Positions 5,809-62,191 of a stretch of DNA of 64,000 bases are shown here, piece after piece (position 1 is the stretch's first letter; every line of letters begins with the position of its first letter). The translations under genes and the position numbers were made by a program. A model generated the notes under the pieces. The model was not told the origin of the DNA. It searched no databases and saw nothing but the letters and a program-made list of their open reading frames with translations. The stretch lies in the sequence record OQ790161.1. The stretch is one strand, 5' to 3'.

Positions 5809-5985
5809 TTCGACGGCGATACCGCCAGCTTCATCGCATACTACACCGATGCCAAGTTCGACATCGTGGATTATCTCAACACCAAGCAAGCCTTCGTGGA
5901 TCCAGTGGGTGGCATCCGGACCAGTGCAGCGGTTGATACCGTTGTGTTGTTCCTGCGCAGCTTCACGGGCAACCCCGAGGATTGA
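5809..5985 (+). CDS. Virion RNA polymerase beta' subunit, exon 2 (58 aa)
   Basis: Begins TTC GAC GGC GAT (FDGD), completing the catalytic motif; ends ..FTGNPED*. Confidence 0.9.
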   Translation, partial: FDGDTASFIAYYTDAKFDIVDYLNTKQAFVDPVGGIRTSAAVDTVVLFLRSFTGNPED

Positions 5986-42055: not shown

Positions 42056-43051
42056 ATGTCGCAGAATCAGAACGAACTCCCGCCGAAGGGCGTACTCAAG
42101 CTGTACGGTGCAGGTGGCGCGGGCATCAACCTGGCCGGCAGCTGGAAGGGCATGCATGGCACCTCCGACGTGGGGACCGCGCTCTGCCAGCTGGTCTACG
42201 CCGATACCTCCCGCTCCAACCTGCCCGATGGCATCGATCCGGAAACGGTCTTCATCATCGATGGCGTGGACGGCTCGGGCAAGGTCCGTGCTGAAAACCA
42301 CATCGAGATCTCCCGCTCCGTGCGCAGCCTGCTGCAGAAGCATGCACCGGGTGACCTGAACGTGGTGCTGTTCTCGGCCTCCGGCGGTTCCGGTTCGGTG
42401 TTCGGTCCGCTGATCATGGCTGAACTGCTGGAAGCCAAGCAGCCGGTGGTGGCACTGGTGGTCGGTTCGGAAGAATCGAACATCACCTGCAAGAACACCA
42501 TGAACACGCTCAAGTCGCTGGAAGCGATCGCCAAGAAGAAGGGCGTGCCGGTGGTGATCAACTACCAGCACAACTCGCGCACCGGCAAGCGTTCGGAAGT
42601 GGATGTCCACGTGCGTTGGACGCTGTCGGCCCTGGCCATGCTGGCCAGCCGTCGCAACCGCGAACTGGACACGATGGACCTGGCCAACTTCTTCAACTTC
42701 TCCAAGGTCACCTCGGTCGAGCCGCAGCTCTCGCTGCTGCACGTCTACGACAAGGACGAAGAAGTCGAAGCGGCAACCCTGCCGATCGCCATCGCCTCCC
42801 TGCTCAAGGACGCCGACCAGCCCACCCACTCGGTCATCCCCGAGTACAGCACCGTGGGCTACCCGCGCGAAGCCATCGACAGCTTCGATCGTCTGCACTA
42901 CGTCATCACCGTGGACGGTGTGCAGGTCATCGCCAAGATGATGGGTGATCGCCTGGACGAAGTGACCAAGGTCGCCGCCTCGCGCGTCAAGCACGACTCG
43001 ATCGTGTCGGCCAACGACGCCGTCACCGACGACGGTCTGCTGATCCTGTAA
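42056..43051 (+). CDS. phuZ: Phage tubulin PhuZ
   Basis: GAGGAGINL, tubulin signature SASGGSGS, LDTMDLANF, acidic C-terminal tail DDGLLIL. Confidence 0.93.
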   Translation: MSQNQNELPPKGVLKLYGAGGAGINLAGSWKGMHGTSDVGTALCQLVYADTSRSNLPDGIDPETVFIIDGVDGSGKVRAENHIEISRSVRSLLQKHAPGDLNVVLFSASGGSGSVFGPLIMAELLEAKQPVVALVVGSEESNITCKNTMNTLKSLEAIAKKKGVPVVINYQHNSRTGKRSEVDVHVRWTLSALAMLASRRNRELDTMDLANFFNFSKVTSVEPQLSLLHVYDKDEEVEAATLPIAIASLLKDADQPTHSVIPEYSTVGYPREAIDSFDRLHYVITVDGVQVIAKMMGDRLDEVTKVAASRVKHDSIVSANDAVTDDGLLIL

Positions 43052-43121
43052 TCGGCATATCGCCTCTCCCCTACTTCGGTGGGGGAGAGGGTGTTTGTGC
43101 TTTTCTCTTCGAGGTTGCCCC

Positions 43122-43322
43122 ATGAACGACCTGTTCGTATGCGACACCTGCAATAACATCGATGCGCTGGACTTTGCGTATCCCGATGGCTACATCCCCG
43201 GTACCCCCTACGAGTGCACCCAATGTCAAACTGGTCAATGGCACGGCCTGCTGACCCAACGGGCGTACGACCCGAGCAAGGACGTGGTGGTCAACCGCCC
43301 ATCCGGCGTCGGCCTGAGCTGA
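43122..43322 (+). CDS. Small Zn-ribbon protein (66 aa)
   Basis: CDTC...CTQC pairs; GAGGT RBS. Confidence 0.65.
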   Translation: MNDLFVCDTCNNIDALDFAYPDGYIPGTPYECTQCQTGQWHGLLTQRAYDPSKDVVVNRPSGVGLS

Positions 43323-43798
43323 GTCTGGTTGTTAACCTCAATCCCGAATCGTCGATCAACCAGCGTGAACAAACCATCCTCCACACCTTCGGGGTGGACG
43401 GACATTGGTTCTTCACTTTCATCGTCGATGTCCTCATCAAAGGGATTGTGGATCCGTTGGCACCGCGCTATCTGCGCGATGTCCAACTGAGTTCGGTTGC
43501 GCTGTACATGGAAGACCAACTCCATCAGCGACTACTCAGTTGTGTTGAAGCAGAAGGCTACGACGACGACCGCATGACGTGGTTTGATGCCGTGGCTACG
43601 GAAGAGATCCCCAGCCTACTCGGTGTTGCCGAAAAGGTCTTGGGGGAAATGCTCGATGTCTTGAGCAACATGGAGGCTCCGGCCTATTGTGTCCATCGGC
43701 GACTGGATAAGTACCTGATGGGTTACTCCACCTTCGGCAATCACGCCGGCTACCTCCACTTCTACTTTAGCGAAAATGCAGATAACCATTCACTATGA
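43319..43798 (+). CDS. Hypothetical protein (~159 aa), probable CTG start
   Basis: CTGA overlap with the upstream stop; no ATG nearby in frame. Confidence 0.55.
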   Translation: MSLVVNLNPESSINQREQTILHTFGVDGHWFFTFIVDVLIKGIVDPLAPRYLRDVQLSSVALYMEDQLHQRLLSCVEAEGYDDDRMTWFDAVATEEIPSLLGVAEKVLGEMLDVLSNMEAPAYCVHRRLDKYLMGYSTFGNHAGYLHFYFSENADNHSL

Positions 43799-44210
43799 CG
43801 TGGCTGAGATCTACACGCCTGACGACCTTAAGTTGTTATCGCAACTGTCGTTGGACATGAAAGACCTCACCGATCACGTTCTCACCCACTGGGTCATCTA
43901 CCGTCATGGCGACATCACGGAGATGTATGAAACCCTGATCGATGCTGCCTACGAACACATTCACCACAAGTTCGGCGACACCGATGCAGGAATTCACGCC
44001 CATCAGGTACTGGCCAATGGCGCAGACCAGTTGGTGCAGATGACGGACATGCTCGCCCAGTACTTGGCAAGGATGCTCGTGAACATGCCCGATGAGATCA
44101 GTCGGGGCCGGATGAGCGAAGATCACTACCATTTTCTCAGAGTGGATAGGATCAGCCTCACCGGACGCTTTGCCGTCTTGCGAACGGACACCATCGACCT
44201 CTACGGCTGA
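43776..44210 (+). CDS. Hypothetical protein, member of the phuZ-polymerase small-gene array (144 aa)
   Basis: Helical body, C-terminal beta-hairpin-like segment. Confidence 0.65.
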   Translation: MQITIHYDVAEIYTPDDLKLLSQLSLDMKDLTDHVLTHWVIYRHGDITEMYETLIDAAYEHIHHKFGDTDAGIHAHQVLANGADQLVQMTDMLAQYLARMLVNMPDEISRGRMSEDHYHFLRVDRISLTGRFAVLRTDTIDLYG

Positions 44211-44352
44211 CCTCGCGTCAGCCGGTATGTGCCGTCAAACCGCGTAGATCGCTCACAGAGCGCCTTACGTTTAAACCTACATAACTCGGTAATCTAGTGA
44301 GGGAAACGGGCCTGTGGCGCCGCTGAGGCCCTTTCTGATTGAGTGACATTCC

Positions 44353-44742
44353 ATGACCCCCAAAGCAAAAACGTTCTACAGCCAGTTTGTGTTTTCCCTT
44401 GCACCGATCTTGCCGGACCTCGAAGCCGATGTGAGAAGATTGCAGCGGGAGCTGGCGGAACAGGGACACTCATTCTCACATGAGGACCTGATCGCCACGT
44501 GGGTGATGTTTCAGTTGGAGCGCCATCTGCACCTGACGTTGGAGTTCTCCGACCAAAGGTCGATGGCTCAACGATTGGCCTGGGCACTCGATGAACCCTT
44601 CTTCCACAATCACGCCGTCCCCCGCGATCTGCTCATCAGTCAGATCTTGCCGCTGCTAACGCATCGGGAGACCGTACCTTACACCGATCGCATTTGTAGA
44701 GTCAGCACCCGCCTGCCGGATCTGCATGTGCGTTTTCTCTGA
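44353..44742 (+). CDS. Hypothetical protein, array member (129 aa)
   Basis: Ends ..RVSTRLPDLHVRFL. Confidence 0.65.
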   Translation: MTPKAKTFYSQFVFSLAPILPDLEADVRRLQRELAEQGHSFSHEDLIATWVMFQLERHLHLTLEFSDQRSMAQRLAWALDEPFFHNHAVPRDLLISQILPLLTHRETVPYTDRICRVSTRLPDLHVRFL

Positions 44743-44756
44743 GAGCTGAAGTCGAA

Positions 44757-45494
44757 ATGAAAAACATTTCCGTGGGCACCGTGGTAGTACTACCCGCACA
44801 TGTCATGGTGTTGGAAATCATCGAACGCATGAACGAGTTTGCCCAACTCCCCGGTAACGAGATCTTCGCCGAGGCGTTGGCTTACCGTTACATGCCCGGT
44901 CGAACCCATACTGGCATCAGTCGCCTGCCCGTGGCCGATCTGGTGGTGGCCATGTACCTGGACATGCTGTGCAACTACTGCCAGTGGAACATCTCTGGTC
45001 CAAACGATCAGTACACCGAAGAGCAGTGGCGCAAGATGGTTCCGCGTTGGAAGGACGTCACGCGTGAGCAGGAGATCGCCATGTTCAACGCAGTGGTTCA
45101 GCCGGCGTATGAAGTCATCGGCGATTGGGCAGAGCAGTTCAAGACCACGGCCGATGGTTGGCATGTGTGGGGTGCCCGCCGTGTGGGTCTGGATGTCATC
45201 ATCGAAAAGGGTGAGGACTACCGGATCTTGGATTGGAACCGTCGCATGGAACTGGCCAAGGAATACGTCGACGCCGAGTCCAAGGACGAACCCCTGCCAC
45301 CCGAAGCGTGGGTCCCCGATCACGAAGCCCGTCGCTTCGTCGAGCTGCTGCGTCAGCAGATGCGCGAACCCAGTCCGCTGGGTAAGATGGCCATCGAGAA
45401 CCACGACAAGGAACTGGCCCGCCGCAAGGCGCAGGCCAAGCCCAACCGCAAGCAGCGCGGCCGGCAGTACAGCAACAATAGCGGCACGCTGTGA
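44757..45494 (+). CDS. Hypothetical protein, array member with C-terminal extension (245 aa)
   Basis: Contains ..ARRVGLDVIIEKGED. Confidence 0.7.
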   Translation: MKNISVGTVVVLPAHVMVLEIIERMNEFAQLPGNEIFAEALAYRYMPGRTHTGISRLPVADLVVAMYLDMLCNYCQWNISGPNDQYTEEQWRKMVPRWKDVTREQEIAMFNAVVQPAYEVIGDWAEQFKTTADGWHVWGARRVGLDVIIEKGEDYRILDWNRRMELAKEYVDAESKDEPLPPEAWVPDHEARRFVELLRQQMREPSPLGKMAIENHDKELARRKAQAKPNRKQRGRQYSNNSGTL

Positions 45495-45889
45495 GTAGGG
45501 CCGCCCCGAGCTCACGTGTGGTGTTCATTGGCGGCCGTACATTGACGGAGCTCATCCGTGGAACGCTGGAAAAGCACATCGGTCATGTAGCTGACATTAT
45601 CGATGCGCAGAAGATCGTGGAGTCATTACTGGAAGAGTTCTTCTACGGAGGGAGCTTGCAAGATGACTTCTACGAACAGCTGGCTGCTTATCGAGCCACC
45701 ACCCACGAGATTGAATACGCACGCAAGGAGATCCTCGCTTCGATCTCCCAGCAGGTCCAGAGTGCCATCGGCATTATCTGGCCATCCAACCACTACTCTT
45801 TCGAGTTCATTGCCGGTGGTGATCTGCGGATCACCGAAACCCGTCCGACGCCGGTGTTCAAACCGAGTCGTCTACAACTGGTAGGCTAA
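45491..45889 (+). CDS. Hypothetical protein, array member (132 aa)
   Basis: GTGA overlap; ..FEFIAGGDLRITE. Confidence 0.65.
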   Translation: MSRAAPSSRVVFIGGRTLTELIRGTLEKHIGHVADIIDAQKIVESLLEEFFYGGSLQDDFYEQLAAYRATTHEIEYARKEILASISQQVQSAIGIIWPSNHYSFEFIAGGDLRITETRPTPVFKPSRLQLVG

Positions 45890-45891
45890 CC

Positions 45892-46347
45892 ATGCTCATC
45901 GTCATCGCCATCCAAGACATTTGGAAGCGCTTTGGTGAAGATAGCCAGGCATTGCAGAACATCGGGTTGCAGGTCGAGGACGTTGTCAAGCTGGCCTACG
46001 GGTACGCTTGTCTGACCAATCGACCCTACGCCCATGAAGCGATGATCCCGGTCAGTGCCAACATCTTTACTGCCGTGCGTGACTTACTTGTCGACCGATT
46101 GCCCTTTGACGACCGGCTGCCGTTCACCCGGCAGTCGGGTTATGGCGTCAATGACCAAGTCGTTCATCGGGTGGTTGACATAGTAGGTGAAATTTCACAG
46201 ATGCTGTCCGATGCTGTAATCAGGCAAGTAGGTCACTTCCCCGCCGGGTTGATCTTGCAACGTCTGATGGGTCCAGATCTGGTACTTTACTACAACACTG
46301 AGGATTCACGTGTACCTCATCCTTTCGCCGAAAGTCGAACCAGCTGA
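45892..46347 (+). CDS. Hypothetical protein, array member (151 aa)
   Basis: ..LQRLMGPDLVLYY. Confidence 0.65.
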   Translation: MLIVIAIQDIWKRFGEDSQALQNIGLQVEDVVKLAYGYACLTNRPYAHEAMIPVSANIFTAVRDLLVDRLPFDDRLPFTRQSGYGVNDQVVHRVVDIVGEISQMLSDAVIRQVGHFPAGLILQRLMGPDLVLYYNTEDSRVPHPFAESRTS

Positions 46348-46705
46348 CCTGCGCAGCGGGGACGATACGCTGGAAGACCTGCCAGTCGACTACACCGACC
46401 TGTTGCAGTTTACCCTCCAGCACTGGCCATTGCTGGATGGAGGGGTCCTCTCCATGGAAGAACTCAGGGCCGCTGCTGAAGCCCACCTGAGCCAGCCCTA
46501 TTTCCTCACCAAGCTCCATGACTACCACCACATGCAGGAAGTAGTCAATGCGGTGGTGAACGCCGTACAAGTGTTCTACGACAGTCTCAGCGGACAGCTC
46601 ACCCCTTTGATTGAACCCTTCGGTCTGGACGTCACGATCCGACTGACCCGCTACATGCACAAAGACCTGGTGATTCGGGTGGAGAAACCTTACTATGGAC
46701 CATAA
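46310..46705 (+). CDS. Hypothetical protein, array member (131 aa)
   Basis: GAGG RBS, GTG start; ..LTRYMHKDLVIRVE. Confidence 0.65.
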   Translation: MYLILSPKVEPADLRSGDDTLEDLPVDYTDLLQFTLQHWPLLDGGVLSMEELRAAAEAHLSQPYFLTKLHDYHHMQEVVNAVVNAVQVFYDSLSGQLTPLIEPFGLDVTIRLTRYMHKDLVIRVEKPYYGP

Positions 46706-47345
46706 AGGCTACATCAATCTGGTCCTCCCCGGTCATGGATTGATCTTGGACTACGGCCCGACGGATAATCTCCTGCGCACCATGGGTACCTCAGTCAAAG
46801 AGATGATTGAGATGTTCATCGCCGCGTGGGCAGAGTACAAGTCCGTTGACATGCATTACACCTGCAACAACGGCCCCCTCAATCTGGACGAAGACTGGGG
46901 TCCTGGCTTTACGCAGTTGCGCACCCATGCCCATTGGATGGTCATGGACATTGTGTTCGAGAACGCGTTCATGCGTTTTGAGCGCGGTGAGATTGAGAAG
47001 ATGAGCAAGCAGGACATGCGCGATGCTGAATCGATCATGCTCTCGCTGTGGGATTCGCTGAGTTCCTACATCTTCGAACTGCTCATCGAAATGGGTGCAC
47101 ACGAAGGACAGATCTCCCTCCTGCGCTTTGTGCGCTGGATCGGCGATGACTTCATCATCAGTCTGCCCCGACGCACCACCGCCATCGCTCTCAAGCAACA
47201 GATCGAGTTCGATAAGCGCCAGAAGGAATTCCAAGCATCGCTGGATGAGTCCCGCCAAGAGGAGAAACAGTTTGTCCAGAATCTACGTGACCGGTCCCCG
47301 CTTTGTTACTACCGCAGTGATCGGGTCAACGACCTGTCTGAATGA
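46695..47345 (+). CDS. Hypothetical protein, array member (216 aa)
   Basis: GGAG RBS; ..FVRWIGDDFIISL. Confidence 0.68.
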   Translation: MDHKGYINLVLPGHGLILDYGPTDNLLRTMGTSVKEMIEMFIAAWAEYKSVDMHYTCNNGPLNLDEDWGPGFTQLRTHAHWMVMDIVFENAFMRFERGEIEKMSKQDMRDAESIMLSLWDSLSSYIFELLIEMGAHEGQISLLRFVRWIGDDFIISLPRRTTAIALKQQIEFDKRQKEFQASLDESRQEEKQFVQNLRDRSPLCYYRSDRVNDLSE

Positions 47346-47745
47346 CTACCCCGGACTGAAGGCCGAAGAGTTCTTCGGCCGTACGTACTCGCTGACCATC
47401 GTGGGCAACATCTTGTTTGAGTTGATGATGTCCTCCAATGGCGAGACGTTCTCCGGTCGTGAGTTGGTTCAGCACGTGGAGGCGGAGATCCTGTCCACCT
47501 ACAAGGTGGCCACCGTCTACAACCCCAAGACCGACTGCCATGAGCTGGTCACCGAGCCCAATGCGTACTTCCAGTCCGAAGCGGGCGAAGCGCTGCTGAC
47601 GGCCCTGTACCAAGCCATGCTGGATCAGTTCTGGCCTCTGCTGGCCACCAACCTTGTTGCCCGCAGGTCGGCCATGCTCAGGCGCATCAATTACCACCAG
47701 ATGGAAATCAGCATGAACCGCTTGGAGTACAGCGATGGCAGCTAA
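47342..47745 (+). CDS. Hypothetical protein, array member (~134 aa); start needs one extra C at 47349-47352
   Basis: ATGA overlap with the upstream stop; C4 to C5 gives MTTPGLKAEEFFGR. Confidence 0.55.
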
Positions 47746-48106
47746 GGTTGTCGTACTGCACGGAGGCCCCTCGTTCGAAAGAGCGCGGGGCCTCCTCAAT
47801 GGGATGGTTAATTTTCCGGATCTCGACAGCTTTGGCCAAGTCATGGTCGAGTTGATGATCAATGGCGTTGGCCTGTCCCCTCAGCAACAAGAGCAACATC
47901 TGGAACGCTACCTTCAGCGGTTTGAGTTGCCCGGTGAAACCGAAGATGATCGCGGCTTTGATCGGCGCGTCATGCTGGAAGCTCTCCACTTCGCCGCCCG
48001 GCAATTCCGGGTCGCCTGGGACACCCAAGTCCCGCCGGATCTGAGGATCGAAGATTACCAGTTCAGCCGTTGGCTGAATATGGATCTGATGTTGCAAAGA
48101 CGCTAG
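47735..48106 (+). CDS. Hypothetical protein, array member (123 aa)
   Basis: GGAG RBS; ..FSRWLNMDLMLQRR. Confidence 0.65.
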   Translation: MAAKVVVLHGGPSFERARGLLNGMVNFPDLDSFGQVMVELMINGVGLSPQQQEQHLERYLQRFELPGETEDDRGFDRRVMLEALHFAARQFRVAWDTQVPPDLRIEDYQFSRWLNMDLMLQRR

Positions 48107-48139: not shown

Positions 48140-48550
48140 ATGCTCAATACCAGTTCGATCGTGATCGACAGCACCGTCTCGTTCGATCTCTACCCGGCAG
48201 CGTACTTGCAGTCCAAGGTAACCAATGCCAAGGTCGTGGGTATCGTCAGTGCCCGTATGGCCATGCAGTTGGGTTTCGATGCCCCGGCCATGCACGTCAC
48301 CGTGTACCCCACCCTGCCGCCGGGTACTCCCAACGGCTACGACAAGTACCAGTACATCTACGTCAAGCTGCCCTCCGGTGAACACACCTTCTACGGCGTG
48401 CCGTGGATCAAGGAGTCCACCTTCAAGGAGGAGATGGTTCGCACCGTCGCCTTGTACTTGGAGAACATCTCGCCCGAACAACAGAACCGTGCGATCCAAG
48501 CCCTGTCGGCCATCGGTCTGACCGTGGCCAAGGTCGAAGAGCAGTCCTAA
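48140..48550 (+). CDS. Conserved hypothetical protein (phiKZ gp49-like position, 136 aa)
   Basis: VSFDLYPAAYL..YGVPWIKEST pattern; directly upstream of the DNA polymerase. Confidence 0.6.
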   Translation: MLNTSSIVIDSTVSFDLYPAAYLQSKVTNAKVVGIVSARMAMQLGFDAPAMHVTVYPTLPPGTPNGYDKYQYIYVKLPSGEHTFYGVPWIKESTFKEEMVRTVALYLENISPEQQNRAIQALSAIGLTVAKVEEQS

Positions 48551-48599: not shown

Positions 48600-48832
48600 A
48601 TGTTGTAGACGACACCGGCGGATGGCGTCTAACACCCCTAACGACAGCCCGATGCACTGTTATGGTTCTCGATTTCCCAGACAGTGTTAAGGGATTCAGC
48701 CTGTAGGTAGGGATAGTGACACCAATTGGTGTCACCACGGCCAGCGAGCGCTCGCTTGCTTTGGACTAGCAAGCTTGATGCGCTTCGGAAGTGGAAGAGG
48801 GGCTCCATGAGGAGCCCCTTCTTTTTATGCCG
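48600..48832 (+). ncRNA. Candidate structured non-coding RNA
   Basis: Several stems, no convincing ORF, bounded by GCTACTATG and a terminator. Confidence 0.35.
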
Positions 48833-48893: not shown

Positions 48894-51098
48894 ATGCACC
48901 ATTTCGTAAATCCTCCGGAGACCTACGTCCGGAAAGTTGATGTACAGAAAACCTACTTGGACGATGCCGCCCTCTTCGTTTCCAAGATGCGCAGGATCTC
49001 GTTGGAGCAAGCCCGGCAGTTCGTGCTGAACACGACCGCCCCCTCCGGCAGCTTGCCGATGAAAGACCCCAACACCATGGTTCTGGTCCGTCAGCCCAAT
49101 GGCGACCGGGAACAGCGACAGATGCGGTTCTCCGAATTCCTTCGTTCGGTTTACGATGGTCGGCAGATGCTCTCGCCTTCGATGACAGCGTATATCCATC
49201 CGGACGACAAGAAGTCGCTGCTGGCGATCTACATTGACAAGAACTTGGATCGACGCAAGAAAGCCAAGGCTGAGATGTTTGCAGCCAAGATGGCCGGCGA
49301 CGAGGCGATGGCCAACATCGGCAACTCCAAGCAGACCACGTTCAAGATCAAGAACAACTCCCTGTCCGGTGCGCACAGCTCGCCGTACACGATCCTGTGG
49401 AACAAGTCCAGCCACTCCACGCTGACCTCGACCTGTCGTGTGGCCACCTCGTATGGCAACACCAACAACGAGAAGTTCCTGTACGGCAACCGGCATTACT
49501 GGTGCCCGGACATCGCCCGCAACAACATCATCTCGATCATCAACCACACCGACCTGGAGAACATGGCGCGTGTGATGGCCAAGTTCGAACTGCAACCACC
49601 CACGGTCGCTGATACGATGGAGATGCTGCACCGGTGCTGTGACAACTACTGGCGCGATGCAGATGAAACCGAGAACCTGCACCAGTTGGTGCTGTCGCTG
49701 ACGGACGTGGAACGTGCCGCTGTGATGTTCACCTCGGACCTGTATCACCTGTCCAAGTCCAACGATGCATTCGTGCGTGAATTCCTGCGTCGCCTGTCCC
49801 ACCATCCGGCCCAACCACAATCGGTTGAAGAAGCCAAGGGTTGGATCAAGCGCATGGACGGTAACCTCGAAGCGTTCGTGTTCATGCTCTGCTCCAAAGA
49901 ACTGGCCGGCGGTACGCTTAAGGACGCCAACGGCGACAAGACCAACATCCCGCTGGATGTGGCCCGTCCGGAAGACTACGGTCGTCTGGGTGCTGCTGCC
50001 AAGAGCGTGATCGATACGCTGGACCATTACGAAGAGTTCATTCGCTGCTTCTGGGTGAGCAACAACCTGCCCGCCTCGATCTTCCATGCGCCGGGTATCC
50101 TGCGCCGATCGGCTGTGACCTCTGATACCGACTCGACCATCTTCACCGTCCAGCATTGGACGATTTGGTACCGTGGCCAATTGGACTTCACCAAGGAGTC
50201 TGAAGACATCGCCTCGACCACTGTGTATTTGGCCGGTCAGCTGATTCGCCACATCCTGGCCACCACCTCCGGTGCCATGGGCGTTGCCAAGCAGTACGTC
50301 AACAAGCTTTCGATGAAGAACGAATACTACTTCCCGGTATTCAGCCTGACCTCGAGAGCCAAGCACTATTACGCCTACCAAGCCGCGCAGGAAGGCAACG
50401 TGCTCAAAGAGCTGGAACTGGAGATCAAGGGCGTGGCCCTGCGTAACTCCAACATTCCACCTGACATTACCGGTAAGGCCCATGCACTGATTCGTCATGT
50501 CATGGACACCGTGATGGCCGGTAAGAAGCTCAATGCGTCCCAAGTCCTGCGTTATGTAGCCAAGGTCGAAGATGACATTCGACAGGGCGTGCTGAGCGGC
50601 TCCTACAGCCTGCTGGGCAAGATGCAGATCAAGGGCCGGGATGCATACAAGAATCCGGAGTCTTCCAACTTCCTCCACTACGACATGTGGGAATCGGTCT
50701 TTGCCGACACCTACGGTCATGCACCGCCTCCACCGTACGTGGCCGTCAAGGTCCCGGTCGATCTGGAGCGCAAGCAAGACATGGAGAAGTGGCTCAAGGG
50801 CATGGAGAACCAAGCCATTGCCGATCGTCTGCGTACGTGGCTGGAAGCCAACAACAAGACGACCATGGCCATCATGATGTTGCCTGAGCAGGTACTGGCA
50901 TTGACGGGTATCCCCAAGGAGATCGTCGCCGCTGTGGACATTCGCCCGCTGATCATTCAGACGGTCGAAGCGTTCTACCTGATCTTGGAGTCGCTGGGCA
51001 TCTTCATGAAGAACAAGGACCAAACCCGTCTGGTATCGGATGAGGAATGGTTACTGGCCGAAGATTGGCCGTTGGGTGAATTGCTGATTGCAAGCTAA
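48894..51098 (+). CDS. Family-B DNA polymerase subunit (phiKZ gp50-like, split polymerase)
   Basis: KIKNNSLSG (motif B-like), VTSDTDSTIF (motif C-like), IKGVAL. Confidence 0.85.
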   Translation: MHHFVNPPETYVRKVDVQKTYLDDAALFVSKMRRISLEQARQFVLNTTAPSGSLPMKDPNTMVLVRQPNGDREQRQMRFSEFLRSVYDGRQMLSPSMTAYIHPDDKKSLLAIYIDKNLDRRKKAKAEMFAAKMAGDEAMANIGNSKQTTFKIKNNSLSGAHSSPYTILWNKSSHSTLTSTCRVATSYGNTNNEKFLYGNRHYWCPDIARNNIISIINHTDLENMARVMAKFELQPPTVADTMEMLHRCCDNYWRDADETENLHQLVLSLTDVERAAVMFTSDLYHLSKSNDAFVREFLRRLSHHPAQPQSVEEAKGWIKRMDGNLEAFVFMLCSKELAGGTLKDANGDKTNIPLDVARPEDYGRLGAAAKSVIDTLDHYEEFIRCFWVSNNLPASIFHAPGILRRSAVTSDTDSTIFTVQHWTIWYRGQLDFTKESEDIASTTVYLAGQLIRHILATTSGAMGVAKQYVNKLSMKNEYYFPVFSLTSRAKHYYAYQAAQEGNVLKELELEIKGVALRNSNIPPDITGKAHALIRHVMDTVMAGKKLNASQVLRYVAKVEDDIRQGVLSGSYSLLGKMQIKGRDAYKNPESSNFLHYDMWESVFADTYGHAPPPPYVAVKVPVDLERKQDMEKWLKGMENQAIADRLRTWLEANNKTTMAIMMLPEQVLALTGIPKEIVAAVDIRPLIIQTVEAFYLILESLGIFMKNKDQTRLVSDEEWLLAEDWPLGELLIAS

Positions 51099-52555: not shown

Positions 52556-54496
52556 ATGTCCATGTCCCGTCCCGGCGACAACAACGGCAATGACAAGAAC
52601 CAGCAGGGCACCCCGAAGAGCGGCGTGTTCAGCGATTCGTTCAACCAGACCGGCAACTCGCAGAACGCCGGCGCTGCCCAGGGCAGCTCCAACACCAACC
52701 GCACCGGTGGCTCGCCGCGTGGCGTGAACCGCATCCTGTCCCAGCGCACCGGCATGGGCCGCAAGCGTCCGGCCGCCGACATCAAGGCGATGCAGGAAGC
52801 CCTGAGCCTGGAACTGGACGCGTTCAACAACAACGCCGCCCTGCCCGAAGCGCAGGACTTCAAGCTGATCATGGCGGACCGCAACCGCCTGAACAAGAAG
52901 GTCGACGCGCTGATCTGCGTGCTGCCGGTCAACCACGAAGGCTCCATCCACGCCGTCATCCACACCCTGCTGCTGGAAGACGCCAACGACGCCTACGAGC
53001 CGACCACCCTGCAGGTCGCCGGCAAGCAGTACCGCTACACCACCGCGGTGGGCGACGTCTACACCCCGGAGTTCTGGGCAACCATCGTGGACGTGGTCAC
53101 CGAGCAGAGCGGCCTGAAGGTCATCCCGTACGACGCCGGTCACCAGACCATCCCGGCTGAAGCGGACATCAAGGACAAGGACGCGATCCACAAGTTCGCC
53201 TTCTTCGCCAGCGAAGCGCTGACCCGCAACGCGCTGAGCCAGATCCTGAAGACCACCGCCGACGTGATCTCCCTGACCGACCTGGGCGACAGCGTCAACA
53301 CCACCGCCGTGATCGACTTCCGTACCGTCGACGACCAGACCGCCTCCGGCCTGCCGCTCGCCAGCGATTACGAAGTGAAGCTGCGTTACAGCGACGTGGC
53401 CGGCGGCCAGGGCACCAACCAGAGCGGCAAGGCGTTCGAGCTCGGCAGCCAGATCCCGCTGGGTGGCGCGACCGGCATCATCGACCTGTCCTACTCGCCG
53501 CCGCCGCAGGCCGGCTTCGGTCAGCAGCAGCAGACCCAGCACTACTGGGCCCGTACCGTGCTGACCCGCCTGGACACCGACCAGGACGTGATCACGCCGG
53601 AACTGCAGGGCCTGTCCCTGCTGGCTGCCACCCTGATCGGCCGCAACCTGAACTGGGCGCGCACCTGGTCGCCGCAGTTCCGCAGCCAGGACGATGTGCT
53701 CAACGACATCGGCGCCATCGGCTACGAACTGCCGGGTCCGGACGGCCAGCCGTACGGTCGCATCCCGACCAACACGGCGTCCTTCGACGACGCGGCGCTG
53801 GCGAAGCTGGTCATGACGGCCATCCACGACCGTCCGATCATCTCGCTGGACATCGAAGAGTCGGGTGAGCTGACCTGGCTGAACCGCGTGCTGCTGGACG
53901 CAGCCAACGGTTCGCAGGAAGCCGAGCAGGCCATCATCGACACGTTCGACAACCTGACCGGCGGCAACTTCAGCAAGCTGTGGACCGGCGGCCGTCTGGT
54001 CGAAGACGACAACAACCGCATCCACCTGGGTTACTTCATCGCCGATGACCTGGGCACCCGTCGTGACATCCGCAACCTGCGCTACCTGCAGGTGCTGAAC
54101 CGTTACGCCGAGCAGGATCCGCAGATGATCGTCAAGTGGCAGGACACCTTCGACAACCAGGACCTGGACCCGGAAGTCCGCCTGGCCGAGCGTGAAGACC
54201 TGATCCGCAAGATCCTGGGCCCGACCGTCCGCATCACCGGCTACGCCCGTCGCGTGTCGTTCAACCCGGACTTCCTGAACTGCGCGCTGGAAGCGGCAGC
54301 GATGGCCGGTCTGCGCATCCGTCCGGAAAACACCCTGATCGGCTTCGGCCAGACCGTCTCGCGCGGTCGCGCCGACATGTCCTCGCTGGCCTTCGGTGGC
54401 CAGGGTGGTCGTGGTGTGTTCGTGCACGGCGGCAACAACAACGCCGGCCGCTCGTTCGCACGTCCGTTCACCGGCCGTGGTCCGTTCCTGCGCTAA
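52556..54496 (+). CDS. chmA: Chimallin, phage nuclear shell protein (646 aa)
   Basis: Segments align by eye with 201phi2-1 gp105 (WART..NDIGAIG, ASFDDAALAKL, IHLGYF..RRDIRNL, ITGYARRVSFNPDFL..AGLRI); disordered N-terminus; directly upstream of nvRNAP beta'; extreme codon bias. Confidence 0.92.
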   Translation: MSMSRPGDNNGNDKNQQGTPKSGVFSDSFNQTGNSQNAGAAQGSSNTNRTGGSPRGVNRILSQRTGMGRKRPAADIKAMQEALSLELDAFNNNAALPEAQDFKLIMADRNRLNKKVDALICVLPVNHEGSIHAVIHTLLLEDANDAYEPTTLQVAGKQYRYTTAVGDVYTPEFWATIVDVVTEQSGLKVIPYDAGHQTIPAEADIKDKDAIHKFAFFASEALTRNALSQILKTTADVISLTDLGDSVNTTAVIDFRTVDDQTASGLPLASDYEVKLRYSDVAGGQGTNQSGKAFELGSQIPLGGATGIIDLSYSPPPQAGFGQQQQTQHYWARTVLTRLDTDQDVITPELQGLSLLAATLIGRNLNWARTWSPQFRSQDDVLNDIGAIGYELPGPDGQPYGRIPTNTASFDDAALAKLVMTAIHDRPIISLDIEESGELTWLNRVLLDAANGSQEAEQAIIDTFDNLTGGNFSKLWTGGRLVEDDNNRIHLGYFIADDLGTRRDIRNLRYLQVLNRYAEQDPQMIVKWQDTFDNQDLDPEVRLAEREDLIRKILGPTVRITGYARRVSFNPDFLNCALEAAAMAGLRIRPENTLIGFGQTVSRGRADMSSLAFGGQGGRGVFVHGGNNNAGRSFARPFTGRGPFLR

Positions 54497-56262: not shown

Positions 56263-56583
56263 ATGTCCGAGAACAAAGACTACAGCCGCATCCTTGCGTT
56301 GGCACTGACTCAGGTCTTGCCGATTGCCAAGCGCGCGGTGGAGGCGGATAACGCCAAGGCTGAAGCCACCGAAGAAGCCATCGCGGCCATCGTTGGTGAT
56401 GATGTCGAATCGGATGCTCAGCTGATTGAAATCAGCGCCGGCTACACGGCCGTCAATCTGGATGAAGTTCGCATCCACCGGGGCGAAGAAGCCCTGCGGC
56501 AGTTCAATACCACCGACAAGTCCGTCGTTGGTCTGGGCGAAAGCGCCCTGGATGGCGAGTTCAACATCGAGTTCGAGCTCTAA
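56263..56583 (+). CDS. Paralog array member 1 (106 aa)
   Basis: LALALTQVLPIA ... LDGEFNIEFEL. Confidence 0.75.
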   Translation: MSENKDYSRILALALTQVLPIAKRAVEADNAKAEATEEAIAAIVGDDVESDAQLIEISAGYTAVNLDEVRIHRGEEALRQFNTTDKSVVGLGESALDGEFNIEFEL

Positions 56584-56646
56584 GTCCTGTTCCACGTAAG
56601 GGTTCTACGGAACCAACCCTTTTTTCTTCCGCAATCGAGAATACTG

Positions 56647-56979
56647 ATGACCCAGAAGACCGATACCGAATTCGCCCGTGCACTGGCCCTGTCGCTGACC
56701 CAGGTCCTGCCCATCGCCAAGCGTGCCGCCCAGGCCGATGGCGTGGCCAACGCCAATGCCAACCTGACGCATCTCAATGACGTCAGCGCCAACGGCGAAT
56801 CGGATGCGTCCAACATCAAGAAGGCTCAGCTGGACAAGGACGTGGCCGCCCACCACGCCGACACCAAGCGCCTGCAGCGTGCCAGCCACCTGCTCGAGCA
56901 GTTCGACCAGACCGAGCAGCACATCCGTGAGCTGCCCGAAGACCACTTCGACGGCACCTTCGAAGTCAAGTTCGACTAA
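56647..56979 (+). CDS. Paralog array member 2 (110 aa)
   Basis: LALSLTQVLPIA ... FDGTFEVKFD. Confidence 0.78.
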   Translation: MTQKTDTEFARALALSLTQVLPIAKRAAQADGVANANANLTHLNDVSANGESDASNIKKAQLDKDVAAHHADTKRLQRASHLLEQFDQTEQHIRELPEDHFDGTFEVKFD

Positions 56980-57043
56980 GCGCCGGCATAAGCGGAGGGT
57001 CTTCGGACCCTCCGCTCCTGTGCCCCCAATCGGATTTTTCTTT

Positions 57044-57553
57044 ATGTCCACCAGCCCCTACCCCAAGATTCCCAGCCTGAGGCTATTGACCGGCGGTCTT
57101 CGCACCACGTTCAAGCCGATGCTCTCCAGTAACCCCGATCCTGAACTCCTCGTTAAGGTGCGAGTGGGACTGCAAGGGGACATCGTGACCCATGGCTACC
57201 ACATCGGCCTGCACGATGCGTTCGTCCAGAACAACCTGGATCTCACCGAGCAGGACTTCAATCACATCACCAAGATGTACTGGTTGCGCATCCGTACCCG
57301 TTTGGAGATGGAGGCATTTGCCAGACGTAGCAACTTGTGGTGGGTGTCGATCGGGCTGAAGTTGCGCCCGGATGCCATCAACTACGCCATGACGAATCAG
57401 ATAAGCCCGTGGCAACACATGGCTAACGGGGATGTGCCTGAAGATGAACTCTATCTTGAAGTGATGCGTGGTCCGGACGAATTCGTTGCCTACGCGATGG
57501 ATCATTACACCAAGCCACTTCCGCCCCTTACCTTGGTGCCGACACCCGGTTGA
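57044..57553 (+). CDS. Hypothetical protein interrupting the array (169 aa)
   Basis: ORF without the family motif. Confidence 0.6.
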   Translation: MSTSPYPKIPSLRLLTGGLRTTFKPMLSSNPDPELLVKVRVGLQGDIVTHGYHIGLHDAFVQNNLDLTEQDFNHITKMYWLRIRTRLEMEAFARRSNLWWVSIGLKLRPDAINYAMTNQISPWQHMANGDVPEDELYLEVMRGPDEFVAYAMDHYTKPLPPLTLVPTPG

Positions 57554-57567
57554 ACTAGGAGAACAAG

Positions 57568-58140
57568 ATGGACCAGTTTCTGTTGAAAACCCCTGACCCC
57601 TATCTTCGCCAAGGTGCGCTGGCCACCACCGACACGCGCGGTGATCGGGTCAAGATCAGTTTCGAGGTGGGTGGGGATTTCGTCTTCACTCATGTCCGCC
57701 CACCTTACGCCAACATCAGTCCCGCTCAAGTGGAAGAGAAAGTGGACCACGTGATCGCCAACGGTGAATCCTTGCGTGGAGTGATGGATGATTACCAGCG
57801 CGTGGAGAACTTCTCACAGGCGGTCAAGGAAACCTTGGCACCCTTGCGCGAAGAGGTCCGCGAAGCCACTTCCCGCACTGTCGAGCTGGATAACCTCACC
57901 CAGTTCTTGGGCGTGAGCCTACGTGGCGTGCTCCCCTTTGCCATTGAGAGCGTCGCACAGCGCCGCTATCAGGCAGAGGTGAATGAAGACCCCGATGCCA
58001 TGGTCAGTGCCGTCAAGGCCCACCAGCTCATCGACAGGGCCGAGGCGGCGCTTGTGGCGCTGCGTGAGACTGACCTCAACATCGACGACAAGTCCGATGA
58101 TGAGCTGGACGGTGAGTTCACCATCTTCTTTGAGGACTAG
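57568..58140 (+). CDS. Paralog array member 3 (190 aa)
   Basis: LGVSLRGVLPFA ... LDGEFTIFFED. Confidence 0.75.
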   Translation: MDQFLLKTPDPYLRQGALATTDTRGDRVKISFEVGGDFVFTHVRPPYANISPAQVEEKVDHVIANGESLRGVMDDYQRVENFSQAVKETLAPLREEVREATSRTVELDNLTQFLGVSLRGVLPFAIESVAQRRYQAEVNEDPDAMVSAVKAHQLIDRAEAALVALRETDLNIDDKSDDELDGEFTIFFED

Positions 58141-58144
58141 ACCC

Positions 58145-58615
58145 ATGTCCTACGATCCGCTGGAAAACTCACCCGCGTTGCAAACCTCCCACAAACAGTT
58201 CATGACCGCCACTGGACTTCAACAGAAGCTGTCTTTGGGCGATCGGATCATGGACTTGGTTTCGGCTGGGTTTGAGGACTGTGCCCCGGATCGGATGGAG
58301 GCTACCACCGGCTATGTGATGGTACCGGTGGCGCGTTTGGAGAGTCTGGGCATACAGATCCATGAAGAGCGCAAGCTGACTCAGTTCCTTGGAGTGGCCT
58401 TGCGTGAGGTCGTGCCCTGGGCGGGTAACGAACTCGGTACCCTCATTGAAGGTCAGGTCACTGAACAGGATCAGGCCTTAGTGAAGGAAGCACAGCAAGC
58501 AGTCACCCGCGCTGAAACGGCACTGGCTGCATTGCGCCAAACAACCTTGTTCATCGACAACACGCCCGCCAACGCGTTCGACGATGAGTTCCGAGTTACT
58601 TTTGAGGAGGAGTGA
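58145..58615 (+). CDS. Paralog array member 4 (156 aa)
   Basis: LGVALREVVPWA ... FDDEFRVTFEEE. Confidence 0.75.
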   Translation: MSYDPLENSPALQTSHKQFMTATGLQQKLSLGDRIMDLVSAGFEDCAPDRMEATTGYVMVPVARLESLGIQIHEERKLTQFLGVALREVVPWAGNELGTLIEGQVTEQDQALVKEAQQAVTRAETALAALRQTTLFIDNTPANAFDDEFRVTFEEE

Positions 58616-59154
58616 TGGACATCGATAAACAAATGGCTGCCCGCGTTTGCACGCTGGTAGCTGAAGGAGTCAGTCCGGACGTGGCCGCACTGCAAGTGAT
58701 TGGCGACGTCAATCATCCGGCCGTCAACGTGATCGAACAGCTCCAACGCACCGAAGGGCTGGATTACTCCCGCACCATCTTGAAGGTTGCCGCCAAGGGA
58801 CTGGAAGGACATCGGCTTGCCCCGGAGCCGGACTACCTCGGCTTTGACTTGGATAGCGTCCAAGAAACCCTGAGCCAGGTCTCCCGTCAGCTGGACACAG
58901 AGCGTGACCTCACTTGCGCACTGGGTGTGGCCCTGCGACAGGTACTGCCTCATGCCGAGCAGGAAGTGAACTCACTCGAAGACGATGCCGACTGCGATCG
59001 CGACAGCGGTACGGCAGAAATAGCTGCTGAAGGTCGCCGCTCCCTCCAACGCGCACGCATCGTCCTGAAGAAGCTCGACCAGACCCACCTGTCGGTACGC
59101 GACTTTAAGGACGATCATTTCGATGAGTCCTTCAACATCAAGTTCGAGGACTGA
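58615..59154 (+). CDS. Paralog array member 5 (179 aa)
   Basis: LGVALRQVLPHA ... FDESFNIKFED. Confidence 0.75.
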   Translation: MDIDKQMAARVCTLVAEGVSPDVAALQVIGDVNHPAVNVIEQLQRTEGLDYSRTILKVAAKGLEGHRLAPEPDYLGFDLDSVQETLSQVSRQLDTERDLTCALGVALRQVLPHAEQEVNSLEDDADCDRDSGTAEIAAEGRRSLQRARIVLKKLDQTHLSVRDFKDDHFDESFNIKFED

Positions 59155-59156
59155 AC

Positions 59157-59684
59157 ATGGATACCAATACGCCAGAAGCCAAGAGAATCATCGAACTGGT
59201 GGCCAAGGAACTCCCGGCACACATACGGGACTATCCTTCCTTCGTAGTGGTTGAGAAGGCTCAAGGAAAAGAAATGGCCAACTTCGCCCGTGCACTCGTG
59301 GCGACTGCGCCGGCTCAGAAGCGGACATCCGGGTTTGATCGGACCGTAGCGATCGGTGAGAACGACGTCTACAAGGCTCACACGCGAATCGACCAAGCCG
59401 TTCAGAACGAGATCAATCGACTGGGCGCCACCGTGGAGGCCTACGGGATTTACACGCAGAGTCTGGCAGTGGTACTGCGCGACGTACTTCCCATGGTGGA
59501 AGAAACGGTGGAATCCACCGGTGAACTGGGCCGTGATTTTATCGAAGCCTACCAACAGGAAAAGCGTCTTCTGCAACGTGCCAAGGCGGTACTCAAGGCG
59601 GTGGATGAAGATCCCATCCTCCATGTTCGTGACGTCTACGCCCAGGACGTCGATGAGCAATTTGACATCAAGTTTGAGGAGTAA
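59157..59684 (+). CDS. Paralog array member 6 (175 aa)
   Basis: LAVVLRDVLPMV ... VDEQFDIKFEE. Confidence 0.75.
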   Translation: MDTNTPEAKRIIELVAKELPAHIRDYPSFVVVEKAQGKEMANFARALVATAPAQKRTSGFDRTVAIGENDVYKAHTRIDQAVQNEINRLGATVEAYGIYTQSLAVVLRDVLPMVEETVESTGELGRDFIEAYQQEKRLLQRAKAVLKAVDEDPILHVRDVYAQDVDEQFDIKFEE

Positions 59685-60423: not shown

Positions 60424-60488
60424 GTATGTGAGCCGGGACCCTTCGGGGTCCCGGTAATCGACCGTTCTTTTTCTTTTAGGAAGTAACC

Positions 60489-62180: not shown

Positions 62181-62191
62181 CTGGTAGAGCA

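Follow-up and report, generated by a model that had tools for sequence, protein, structure and literature searches.

In phage phiKZ, the products of orf47 (Imp2) and orf48 (Imp4) are cargo-specific nuclear-import factors (10.1101/2024.03.27.586873; 10.64898/2026.09.21.753271). Imp4 is needed for import of TopA and Imp2 for import of Nlp1, phenotypes that are separate and cargo-specific and were shown in phiKZ only; Imp2 itself enters the nucleus via Imp1, and Imp2, Imp4 and Imp5 were reported to be confined to Pseudomonas phages (10.1101/2024.03.27.586873). The gene array described here bears on how the phage nucleus selects proteins for admission. To our knowledge, Imp2, Imp4, Imp5 and Imp7 are the only known cargo-specific factors, reported from phiKZ-like Pseudomonas phages only and without recognisable relatives.

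The DNA analysed, a window of 64,000 nucleotides, corresponds at 100% identity to record positions 248001-312000 of Xanthomonas phage RTH11 (OQ790161.1). RTH11, a nucleus-forming Xanthomonas jumbo phage, carries genes for homologs of Imp1/PicA, Imp3 and Imp6, which are core factors; no sequence homologs of Imp2 or Imp4 were found in RTH11.

A ten-gene array between the PhuZ and DNA polymerase genes

Ten small collinear genes, here called A0 to A9, lie on the plus strand between the PhuZ and DNA polymerase genes. The features of the locus, together with the Imp3 gene of the same window, are as follows.

42056-43051, plus strand: PhuZ gene, annotated as tubulin; upstream boundary of the array, outside the family
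43095-43322, plus strand: small CxxC...CxxC ORF, unannotated in the RTH11 record and unrelated to the array family
43238-43798, plus strand: A0, likely family member; orthologs in 6 relatives, hhalign link to A1 above the null
43776-44210, plus strand: A1, likely family member with a weak hairpin string; hhalign links to A6, A5, A7 and A0
44211-44352, plus strand: conserved intergenic element dividing the array into A0-A1 and A2-A9
44353-44742, plus strand: A2, unproven candidate; collinear ortholog in all relatives
44757-45494, plus strand: A3, homolog of phiKZ gp43; motif-bearing domain of about 150 aa and a C-terminal extension
45491-45889, plus strand: A4, probable member; motif degenerate in RTH11, canonical in the M17 and M23 orthologs
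45892-46347, plus strand: A5, likely family member, strict motif; ortholog unannotated in LucasX DNA
46310-46705, plus strand: A6, likely family member, strict motif; orthologs of 129-145 aa align from 46310
46695-47345, plus strand: A7, likely family member, strict motif; C-terminal extension of about 60 aa
47317-47745, plus strand: A8, unproven candidate; collinear orthologs, second gene upstream of SH3DP
47735-48106, plus strand: A9, likely family member, strict motif, 123 aa; immediately upstream of SH3DP
48140-48550, plus strand: SH3DP gene (PF20287, E 1.5e-31; tblastn match to PHIKZ049, phiKZ gp49); downstream anchor, outside the family
48894-51098, plus strand: DNA polymerase, phiKZ gp50 homolog (annotation; PF20286 and PF00136 on orthologs); downstream boundary
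59803-60423, plus strand: homolog of the core import factor Imp3 (phiKZ gp59; phmmer E 2.4e-20)

The first-pass annotation had placed the start of the array at 43776 and counted about nine members; there are ten candidates, because A0 precedes that start. The encoded proteins are acidic (pI 4.8-6.4) and span 123-245 aa, a wider range than the 120-150 aa that had been given for most of them. Packing is tight, with gene ends that overlap or nearly abut, and the array shares its strand with the SH3DP and DNA polymerase genes, in a neighbourhood conserved across Chimalliviridae. The adjacency to the polymerase fits a role in replication equally well as one in import. At the upstream edge, PhuZ genes were detected by tblastn in 202 phage records, and the CxxC ORF matches LucasX gp45 (2e-34), Xoo-sp14 gp200 and Goslar gp235 by phmmer. 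At the downstream edge, the SH3DP domain PF20287 was matched above its gathering score by the neighbour at 48140-48550 and by none of the ten array proteins.

Several gene starts called for attention. The annotated starts of A3 (44805) and A6 (46454) are probably too late, the true starts probably being 44757 and 46310, and A4 probably begins at 45491. The start of A0 is not certain and probably lies near 43316; the N-terminus of its product shows a hydrophobic strand followed by P. The intergenic element at 44211-44352 has a mean column identity of 60% and 30 invariant columns across 7 phages and is probably regulatory; no convincing RNA fold was seen in it, and a search of Rfam gave 0 matches.

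Each array member has a 1:1 ortholog in at least seven related phages or contigs, and this collinear orthology is strict, with the same order in 8 lineages. No relative examined departs from this one-to-one, order-preserving correspondence, and the duplications that gave rise to the array are accordingly old. Identity between relatives is 26-69% for the array proteins versus 51-83% for the flanking core genes, leaving aside the gp38-like gene (35-53%), and the evolutionary rate of the array copies is about double that of the core genes on either side.

The locus can be aligned with that of phiKZ, where gp39 is PhuZ, gp43 the homolog of A3, gp49 SH3DP and gp50 the DNA polymerase. Among chimallivirus genera the number of genes from the gp43 homolog to SH3DP varies from 5 to 9; in both phiKZ and RTH11 it is six, so that by position A8 corresponds to Imp2 and A9 to Imp4.

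Sequence relationships and the hairpin motif

Pairwise blastp and phmmer comparisons among the array proteins detected no similarity inside the window. Ortholog profiles of 7-13 sequences were compared by hhalign, all against all as the first-pass annotation had proposed, with 110 reversed-profile comparisons serving as the null (maximum 23.8). Eight pairs scored above the entire null: A5-A7 (33.0, over 133 columns), A7-A9 (32.7), A1-A6 (31.8), A0-A1 (30.6), A5-A6 (29.2), A1-A5 (28.6), A1-A7 (27.8) and A5-A9 (25.5), several of them aligned over more than 100 columns. Progressive merging of profiles lifted the hhalign probability to 74-80%, and between array families it never exceeded 80%; A6 reached 79.6% against the merged profile over 128 columns and A1 reached 73.7%. 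Consistent with these links, A1 and A6 are matched by phmmer at an E of about 1e-3, and with the A7 HMM orthologs of both A9 and A6 are matched, with E values from 4e-5 to 4e-4.

The resulting network joins A0, A1, A5, A6, A7 and A9. A3 is marginal, its score with A7 (24.2, in register with the hairpin) being barely above the null maximum. For A2, A4 and A8, hhalign gave no link to other members against the reversed-profile null: A2 showed none exceeding it either pairwise or against merged profiles, having by eye an N-terminal strand and a C-terminal strand-turn-strand pattern; A8 has its C-terminus in register with the merged profile at a score close to the null (19.8); and A4 scored 30.0 against Eowyn gp076 and not above the null against any other RTH11 array family. 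The idea of a divergent paralog array, as first put forward, is supported for the six networked members; A3 and A4 carry the motif, and A2 and A8 are unproven.

All nine hairpin strings that had been quoted were found in plus-strand ORFs where they had been placed. The strict end pattern, which had been ascribed to most members, is present in A5, A6, A7 and A9 only. These 4 occurrences compare with 0.10 expected when array residues are shuffled, and 0 of 20,000 shuffles reached 4, a p-value that is optimistic because the pattern was defined post hoc, after the sequences had been viewed. No strict match occurred in the remaining 16,709 aa of proteins annotated in the window. Among orthologs the signature R-x-h-x-x-D-h-x-h is conserved in the families of A3, A4, A5, A6, A7 and A9; the A3 motif is present in all its close orthologs, and the A3 and A4 families are canonical in relatives. 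A0, A1, A2 and A8 carry strand-turn-strand strings that resemble the signature only loosely. A hairpin HMM trained on A4, A5, A7 and A9 missed A3 and A6 and, beyond its training families, found only Xoo-sp14 gp204.

Predicted fold of the family

The AlphaFold2 model of A9, the one member modelled (pLDDT 88.4, pTM 0.81), contains elements E5-8, H11-22, H30-43, H49-63, H75-98, E108-114 and E117-122, which for this protein bears out the earlier description of helical proteins ending in a hairpin. A search of BFVD with the A9 fold returned at least 30 matches with probability >0.9 and TM 0.5-0.66. Almost all were small jumbo chimallivirus proteins, several per genome; assignment to genes, mostly by length, places array genes of Xoo-sp14, LucasX, RP31, Ea35-70 and Eowyn among them. 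The same search against the PDB gave nothing above probability 0.30. Judging from these models, the shared fold would begin at the N-terminus with a short strand, after which comes P or G, and continue through four helices to a beta-hairpin at the C-terminus that bears the signature; it appears to be previously undescribed and specific to the nucleus-forming jumbo phages (Chimalliviridae).

We judge the hyper-divergent paralog family to be real and undescribed, and the best explanation of its pattern is that at least six or seven array members descend from one ancestral gene. A0, A1, A4, A5, A6, A7 and A9 probably form a paralog family with a common fold; whether all ten array genes belong to it is evenly balanced. 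For A3 and A4, membership is suggested by the motif, by a single hhalign score of marginal height and by fold matches that are weak or assigned by length; among these is a 147-aa BFVD match from the A9 search (probability 0.93) that fits the LucasX ortholog of A4 in length. There are no more than hints that the conserved domain of gp43 shares the A9 fold: the motif, the hhalign value of 24.2 and a fold match of probability 0.47 with the length of Eowyn gp075. In domain-database scans the array proteins had no known domains, PHROGs returning no match at all, and the family explains a block of 'hypothetical proteins' left unannotated by any such database.

Possible roles and comparison with known import factors

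We suggest that a constant scaffold would be built from the three strands together with the buried sides of the helices, and that divergence would lie on the exposed helix surfaces. With a binding partner of its own, every paralog would serve as a cofactor specific for that cargo and deliver it to the machinery of Imp1/PicA, Imp3 and Imp6 at the chimallin shell, in the manner of phiKZ Imp2 and Imp4, which are encoded at the equivalent genomic position. That the array proteins are import adaptors is plausible from their genomic position, though we lean somewhat against it. Counted for this role were the gp43-gp49 synteny, the published roles of gp47 and gp48, the presence of Imp1, Imp3 and Imp6 homologs in RTH11 alongside the absence of sequence homologs for Imp2 and Imp4, and protein size and acidity; counted against it were the lack of similarity to Imp2 or Imp4 and the reported restriction of Imp2, Imp4 and Imp5 to Pseudomonas phages. 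Of the earlier proposal of an expanded family of cargo adaptors, the expanded paralog family was largely right, and the adaptor role is inferred from position, through synteny with Imp2 and Imp4. It had also named gp41, gp47 and gp48 as import factors; gp47 and gp48 are published as such, and gp41 is not named as one in the papers cited here. Taken as a whole, an operon-like collinear array of ten small acidic proteins with a cargo-cofactor role is the best explanation that we can offer, with a chance of being correct that falls just short of even.

Other readings of the array were weighed against this one. The paralogs may be nuclear-resident accessory proteins of replication or transcription, co-expressed with SH3DP and DNA polymerase and thus cargo rather than adaptors. 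Their place directly upstream of these two genes, in the same orientation, with gene ends that overlap or almost touch and in a neighbourhood conserved across Chimalliviridae, would suit such proteins, and in phiKZ the nucleus takes up Imp2 itself (10.1101/2024.03.27.586873). However, ten copies of one small fold would be unusual for replisome accessories, no known replication family was matched in Pfam, NCBIfam, PHROGs or the PDB, and the phiKZ genes at equivalent positions have a demonstrated import phenotype (10.1101/2024.03.27.586873); we regard this reading as unlikely. Less probable still is a single hetero-oligomer at or in the nuclear shell, its subunits joined by exposed beta-sheet edges and its stoichiometry mirrored in gene order. 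Strict 1:1 orthology with order kept in 8 lineages, tight and probably translationally coupled gene packing and a shared three-strand element that, on the model, could pair edge to edge are all compatible with a complex of this kind, but the block from the gp43 homolog to SH3DP varies from 5 to 9 genes by genus, and the Imp2 and Imp4 phenotypes of phiKZ are separate and cargo-specific (10.1101/2024.03.27.586873).

An equally small likelihood attaches to the paralogs being host-takeover or anti-defence effectors in an early gene region. Small, acidic, fast-evolving proteins without known domains would fit this description, and PADLOC gives A1 a weak match (E 2e-4) to one of its candidate defence models; however, that match amounts to 18 bits, and counter-defence genes usually vary in presence or position, whereas the array members are all retained in order and the block is family-wide. 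Finally, there might be no family at all, the array consisting of unrelated small helical proteins with chance hydrophobic ends and a motif drawn post hoc. Pairwise similarity is indeed absent inside the window, hhalign probabilities are modest, and the hairpin HMM is confined to its training families except for Xoo-sp14 gp204. Against this stand the excess of motif matches over expectation with none elsewhere in the window, the eight profile pairs that exceed all 110 null comparisons, and a fold search whose matches are specifically array proteins of chimalliviruses, with none from the PDB; we consider chance resemblance very improbable.

Under the preferred reading of a divergent family of cargo cofactors, a distant chimallivirus of Xanthomonas has, at the position of the phiKZ adaptors, a single hyper-divergent family of paralogs whose confidently predicted fold recurs several times per genome family-wide, supplying a concrete set of candidate adaptors in every chimallivirus. 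A structural hypothesis also follows that is open to checking by means other than genetics, namely a constant strand-hairpin scaffold with variable helix surfaces. A further step, which we consider doubtful, is that phiKZ Imp2, Imp4 and perhaps others belong to the same ancient fold family, beyond recognition by sequence, the block being a universal Chimalliviridae adaptor repertoire in which each paralog licenses its own cargo via Imp1/PicA. If true, adaptors would extend beyond Pseudomonas phages, contrary to the present view.

Comparison of the array with phiKZ gp40-48, which had also been proposed, identified A3 as the gp43 homolog and revealed no sequence or profile similarity of any member to the gp47 (5-member) or gp48 families by phmmer all-versus-all or hhalign. 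In phmmer clustering A3 groups with phiKZ gp43, 201phi2-1 gp75 and PhiPA3 gp039 in a set of 11 proteins; it matches gp43 by hhalign at 90.4% probability over about 110 residues and occupies the same place in the block; gp43 is longer, at 357 aa. Imp4 (gp48), like A9, lies immediately upstream of SH3DP and DNA polymerase, is of similar size (127 versus 123 aa) and is acidic. No solved structure of gp48 was found, and its model, unreliable at pLDDT 47.7, has the element order of A9 (strand, four helices, two strands) and returned only gp48 positional orthologs in a fold search; a confident structural link to Imp2/Imp4 was not found because the Imp4 model was of low confidence. Unlike A9, Imp4 has a C-terminal hairpin with another conserved pattern. 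Imp2 (gp47), like A8, is the second gene upstream of SH3DP and acidic (Imp2 and Imp4 have pI 4.5-4.7 versus 4.8-6.4 for the array); it differs in its greater length (178 aa) and in lacking similarity at profile level to A8 and to all the other members, and its homolog in Psa21 (A0A481W4H7) is a weak A9 fold match at rank 31 (probability 0.41, TM 0.35). Eukaryotic adaptors of the importin-alpha type are built of ARM repeats and are structurally and evolutionarily unrelated to the array proteins, which at 120-250 aa are predicted to combine a strand, four helices and a hairpin without a PDB match; the likeness, by analogy only, is that of a proposed adaptor family bridging diverse cargo to one transport factor.

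Organization and conservation of the array

The window matches Xanthomonas phage RTH11 (OQ790161.1; a circular record of 312,199 bp) at 100% identity and begins at record position 248,001; this phage is a chimallivirus. Ten small genes (A0-A9), all on the plus strand and all annotated as hypothetical, form an array between the PhuZ tubulin and DNA polymerase genes. RNA polymerase beta-subunit genes are also present in the window.

42056-43051, PhuZ tubulin gene, upstream of the array
43095-43322, small ORF with two CxxC pairs (CxxC...CxxC), directly 3′ of PhuZ, unannotated in the RTH11 record
43238-43798, plus, A0
43776-44210, plus, A1
44353-44742, plus, A2
44757-45494, plus, A3
45491-45889, plus, A4
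45892-46347, plus, A5
46310-46705, plus, A6
46695-47345, plus, A7
47317-47745, plus, A8
47735-48106, plus, A9
48140-48550, SH3DP gene, between the array and the polymerase (Pfam PF20287, E 1.5e-31)
48894-51098, DNA polymerase gene, downstream of the array
52556-54496, chimallin-like gene (orthologs with PF25677)

Neighbouring array genes overlap by 4-38 bases or are separated by 2-33 bases, the sole exception being a 142-base gap 3′ of A1. The first-pass annotation had described about nine paralogs starting at 43776 and quoted nine C-terminal hairpin strings; all nine strings were found in the translated ORFs, but orthologs indicate that A0, which lies upstream, joins the series. Ortholog alignments begin at 44757 (A3), 45491 (A4) and 46310 (A6), and the GenBank starts (44805, 45518 and 46454, respectively) look too late. 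Judged from these alignments, the upstream positions are most likely the true starts, and adopting them restores the conserved N-terminal strand. The CxxC ORF and the annotated start of A0 overlap in different frames. It has homologs in LucasX (gp45), Xoo-sp14 (gp200), Goslar (gp235) and metagenome contigs, and in these three phages it is likewise placed after PhuZ.

The intergenic element that separates A1 from A2 (44211-44352) is conserved as DNA across seven phages (column identity averages 60%, and 30 columns are invariant), exceeding the conservation of the adjoining proteins. A short hairpin stands at its start, following the A1 stop codon. The element matched nothing in Rfam, gave no convincing consensus structure, and may serve as a phage promoter or a regulatory site of another kind. 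Strong terminator-like hairpins bracket the block, one just 3′ of PhuZ (43063-43090, 12 pairs) and the other just 5′ of the DNA polymerase gene (48797-48820, 10 pairs); the overall number of terminator-like sites across the region is not above shuffle expectation.

Among GenBank phages, Xanthomonas phage LucasX is the nearest (PhuZ 63% identical). Querying 5.8 billion proteins with A9, and then searching 1.84 billion representatives exhaustively with a profile, recovered ten further A9 ortholog clusters, and their contigs carried six extra complete blocks (loci L017, L022, L023, L028, L029 and L030) and five partial ones. A PhuZ-based search for related loci in IMG/VR found no relatives. Gene order is collinear in every copy, with exactly one ortholog per RTH11 gene. 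The absence of A5 from LucasX (MW825358.1, L004) is only apparent, as the unannotated gap between gp50 and gp51 encodes its ortholog (hmmsearch E 2.5e-43; tblastn 43% over 151 aa). That none of the copies has been lost from any relative argues against redundancy. Array proteins of RTH11 and its relatives share 26-69% identity, compared with 60-65% for PhuZ, 51-74% for SH3DP, 66-83% for DNA polymerase and 66-82% for the DUF7484 gene among the flanking core genes; the small gp38-like gene adjoining PhuZ is less conserved (35-53%).

Elsewhere in the window, a group I intron (5418-5741; Rfam RF00028, 68.9 bits, E 2.2e-15) lies directly 3′ of an RNA polymerase beta-subunit CDS (3940-5412) and 5′ of a small CDS (5776-5985), a position that suggests a split RNA polymerase gene. 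The tail sheath, normally a single gene, is annotated as three consecutive CDS with two interruptions (23821-25935, minus strand).

Evidence for a common family

Pairwise blastp and phmmer comparisons among the array proteins within the window detected no similarity (E >0.1), although the same run readily picked up a separate paralog family at 56263-59684. This second array consists of six adjoining plus-strand genes, with an RNA polymerase beta gene on one side and the homolog of Imp3 (phiKZ gp59) on the other; blastp E is as low as 3e-17 and there is no Pfam match.

56263-56583, plus, second array gene
56647-56979, plus, second array gene
57568-58140, plus, second array gene
58145-58615, plus, second array gene
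58615-59154, plus, second array gene
59157-59684, plus, second array gene

Searches of Pfam, PHROGs, NCBIfam and PADLOC with the A0-A9 proteins gave no credible match; A1 (residues 38-121) weakly resembles PDC-S24, a candidate defence model in PADLOC (E 2.2e-4, 18 bits), probably by chance. Shallow profiles of 2-5 sequences yielded hhalign probabilities below 15%, or three links only. Profiles were deepened to 7-13 orthologs per family with sequences from the metagenome contigs reached via A9 orthologs, and the same profiles reversed served as the null (110 comparisons, maximum score 23.8).

Table. hhalign scores between array families (null maximum 23.8)
A5-A7, 33.0, 133 aligned columns
A7-A9, 32.7
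A1-A6, 31.8
A0-A1, 30.6
A5-A6, 29.2, 109 aligned columns
A1-A5, 28.6
A1-A7, 27.8
A5-A9, 25.5
A3-A7, 24.2, in register with the hairpin

The comparison placed eight pairs clear of the null and A3-A7 barely over it, but left A2, A4 and A8 without a link, and the probabilities were moderate. The A7 HMM also matched orthologs of A9 (three) and of A6 (one), at E 4e-5 to 4e-4, and merging A7 with A5 raised the probability for A9 to 76%, followed by A6 (80%, 128 columns) and A1 (74%). Against the merged superfamily profile A2, A3, A4 and A8 did not rise above the null, and the rest of the window gave no further match. A 4036-aa repetitive protein matching the A9 profile was rejected as a compositional artefact.

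The hairpin pattern proposed in the first-pass annotation, [RF]-x-[ILM]-x-x-D-[LFV]-x-[ILV], is matched strictly by A5, A6, A7 and A9 but not by the other array genes. When residues of the array were shuffled, matches averaged 0.10 and four were never reached in 20,000 shuffles, a figure that overstates significance because the pattern was drawn post hoc from the same sequences. The annotated proteins elsewhere in the window (16,709 residues) contain no match, and the hairpin-like strings of two of them (12117-13553 and 6002-7303) do not rise above chance. Orthologs of A3 and A4 carry the canonical signature, bringing to six of ten the families with it at the end of the conserved domain. A hairpin HMM of 23 columns, built from four of the families, missed A3 and A6. 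At the N-terminus, every family has a stretch of four or five hydrophobic residues and then either a proline or one or two glycines, a feature absent from the first-pass annotation.

An AlphaFold2 model of A9, built from an alignment of 14 ortholog sequences, was confident (mean pLDDT 88.4, pTM 0.81) and contained a strand (5-8), four helices (11-22, 30-43, 49-63, 75-98) and two further strands (108-114, 117-122), in exact agreement with the architecture expected from sequence patterns. The earlier description of predicted helical proteins ending in a hairpin holds for A9, the one member with a confident model. Invariant A9 columns cluster at the hairpin turn, flanked by the signature R and D. 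In a Foldseek search of BFVD the LucasX ortholog ranked first (E 3.7e-11, TM 0.91), ahead of at least 30 further matches at probability >0.9 (TM 0.5-0.66). Those with names are all small uncharacterised jumbo-phage proteins, several per genome, from Ralstonia RP12/RP31, Erwinia Ea35-70, Mortimer, Desertfox and PhiEaH1, Klebsiella Eowyn and others. Assigned to genes by length and organism, they include Xoo-sp14 gp205 and gp206, LucasX proteins sized like the orthologs of A4, A7 and A2 or A6, and RP31 ORF008, Ea35-70 gp212 and Eowyn gp075, gp080, gp081 and gp084, the last six each lying within their own PhuZ-polymerase block. Among 350,542 PDB chains the best match to the model reached only E 0.42, probability 0.30 and TM 0.36, and a PDB sequence-profile search gave chance matches alone. 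By the BFVD and PDB results, the fold is multi-copy, confined to this phage family and without a solved relative.

On sequence grounds, motif, profile comparison and N-termini are three independent lines that agree for most members. We consider it probable that A0, A1, A4, A5, A6, A7 and A9 constitute one paralog family; whether all ten proteins belong to it is evenly balanced.

Candidate functions and comparison with phiKZ

In phiKZ, orf47 (imp2), orf48 (imp4) and orf287 (imp5) are cargo-specific factors, "perhaps acting as specific adaptors", conserved solely in Pseudomonas phiKZ-like phages, whereas Imp1 (gp69), Imp3 (gp59) and Imp6 (gp67) form a conserved core (10.1101/2024.03.27.586873), as later papers repeat. 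Of gp41, gp47 and gp48, given in the first-pass annotation as import-specificity factors, the latter two are published as such, but gp41 is not named in those papers. RTH11 encodes the core:

59803-60423 of the window, Imp3 homolog (E 2.4e-20)
1-819 of the record, Imp6 homolog (E 7e-21)
2724-4232 of the record, Imp1/PicA homolog (E 2e-35)

These lie in a region syntenic with phiKZ gp59-gp70, with homologs of Imp3, gp62, gp64 and gp65 at window 59803-63307 and, where the circular record begins (1-5394), of Imp6, gp68, Imp1/PicA and gp70.

The analysis shows the block to be a conserved, collinear, tightly packed set of fast-evolving acidic paralogs (pI 4.8-6.4) with a common scaffold. Three strands and buried helix faces would form a constant core, with the signature R and D on either side of the hairpin turn, and exposed helix surfaces would vary so as to bind different partners. 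The best single hypothesis, held tentatively, is that these proteins act as cargo-specific import cofactors, because phiKZ genes in the same slots have this published function and the Imp1-Imp3-Imp6 core is present in RTH11. The earlier proposal of cargo adaptors keeps its positional basis, but array members show no sequence or profile similarity to the gp47 and gp48 families. Somewhat less likely, they could be nuclear accessories of replication or transcription, co-expressed with the adjacent polymerase. We regard it as improbable that they are subunits of a single hetero-oligomer at the shell, and equally so that they are effectors of host takeover or anti-defence, for which A1 gave the weak PDC-S24 match. 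That there is no family at all, as the pairwise searches taken alone would have it, is very improbable beside the profile links.

No Pfam family, PHROG function, NCBIfam model or PDB entry exists for the array proteins, and literature searches, which took in a chimallivirus core-genome study from which the word "paralog" is absent, turned up no account of the block as a family of paralogs. SH3DP retrieved PHIKZ049 by tblastn, and the phiKZ record has gp39 as PhuZ, gp49 as SH3DP and gp50 as polymerase. A3 and gp43 are homologous at the sequence level (phmmer cluster of 11; hhalign 90%). Comparison of the array with phiKZ-group families by hhalign gave no link to Imp2 or Imp4, and hhalign all-versus-all within the phiKZ group gave no paralogy. 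Six genes separate gp43 from gp49 in phiKZ (gp44, gp44.1, gp45, gp46, gp47 and gp48), and six (A4-A9) separate A3 from SH3DP in RTH11, with A8 and A9 in the positions of gp47 and gp48.

An AlphaFold2 model of gp48 from seven sequences (gp48 and positional orthologs) was unreliable (pLDDT 47.7, pTM 0.41), although its order of elements is that of A9: strand 3-8, four helices, strands 105-112 and 119-126. A fold search with this model yielded Psa21 gp44 (probability 0.82) and 201phi2-1 gp80 (0.69) alone, shared six low-probability matches with the A9 top-50 list, and is uninterpretable at that pLDDT. The Psa21 Imp2 homolog, the one BFVD target with a confirmed accession, appears weakly in the A9 fold list (rank 31, probability 0.41, TM 0.35). 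The link between the array and Imp2/Imp4 is thus positional and suggestive. Import adaptors of the phage nucleus are an already-known functional class, to which the array proteins would belong if they share the function of their phiKZ counterparts.
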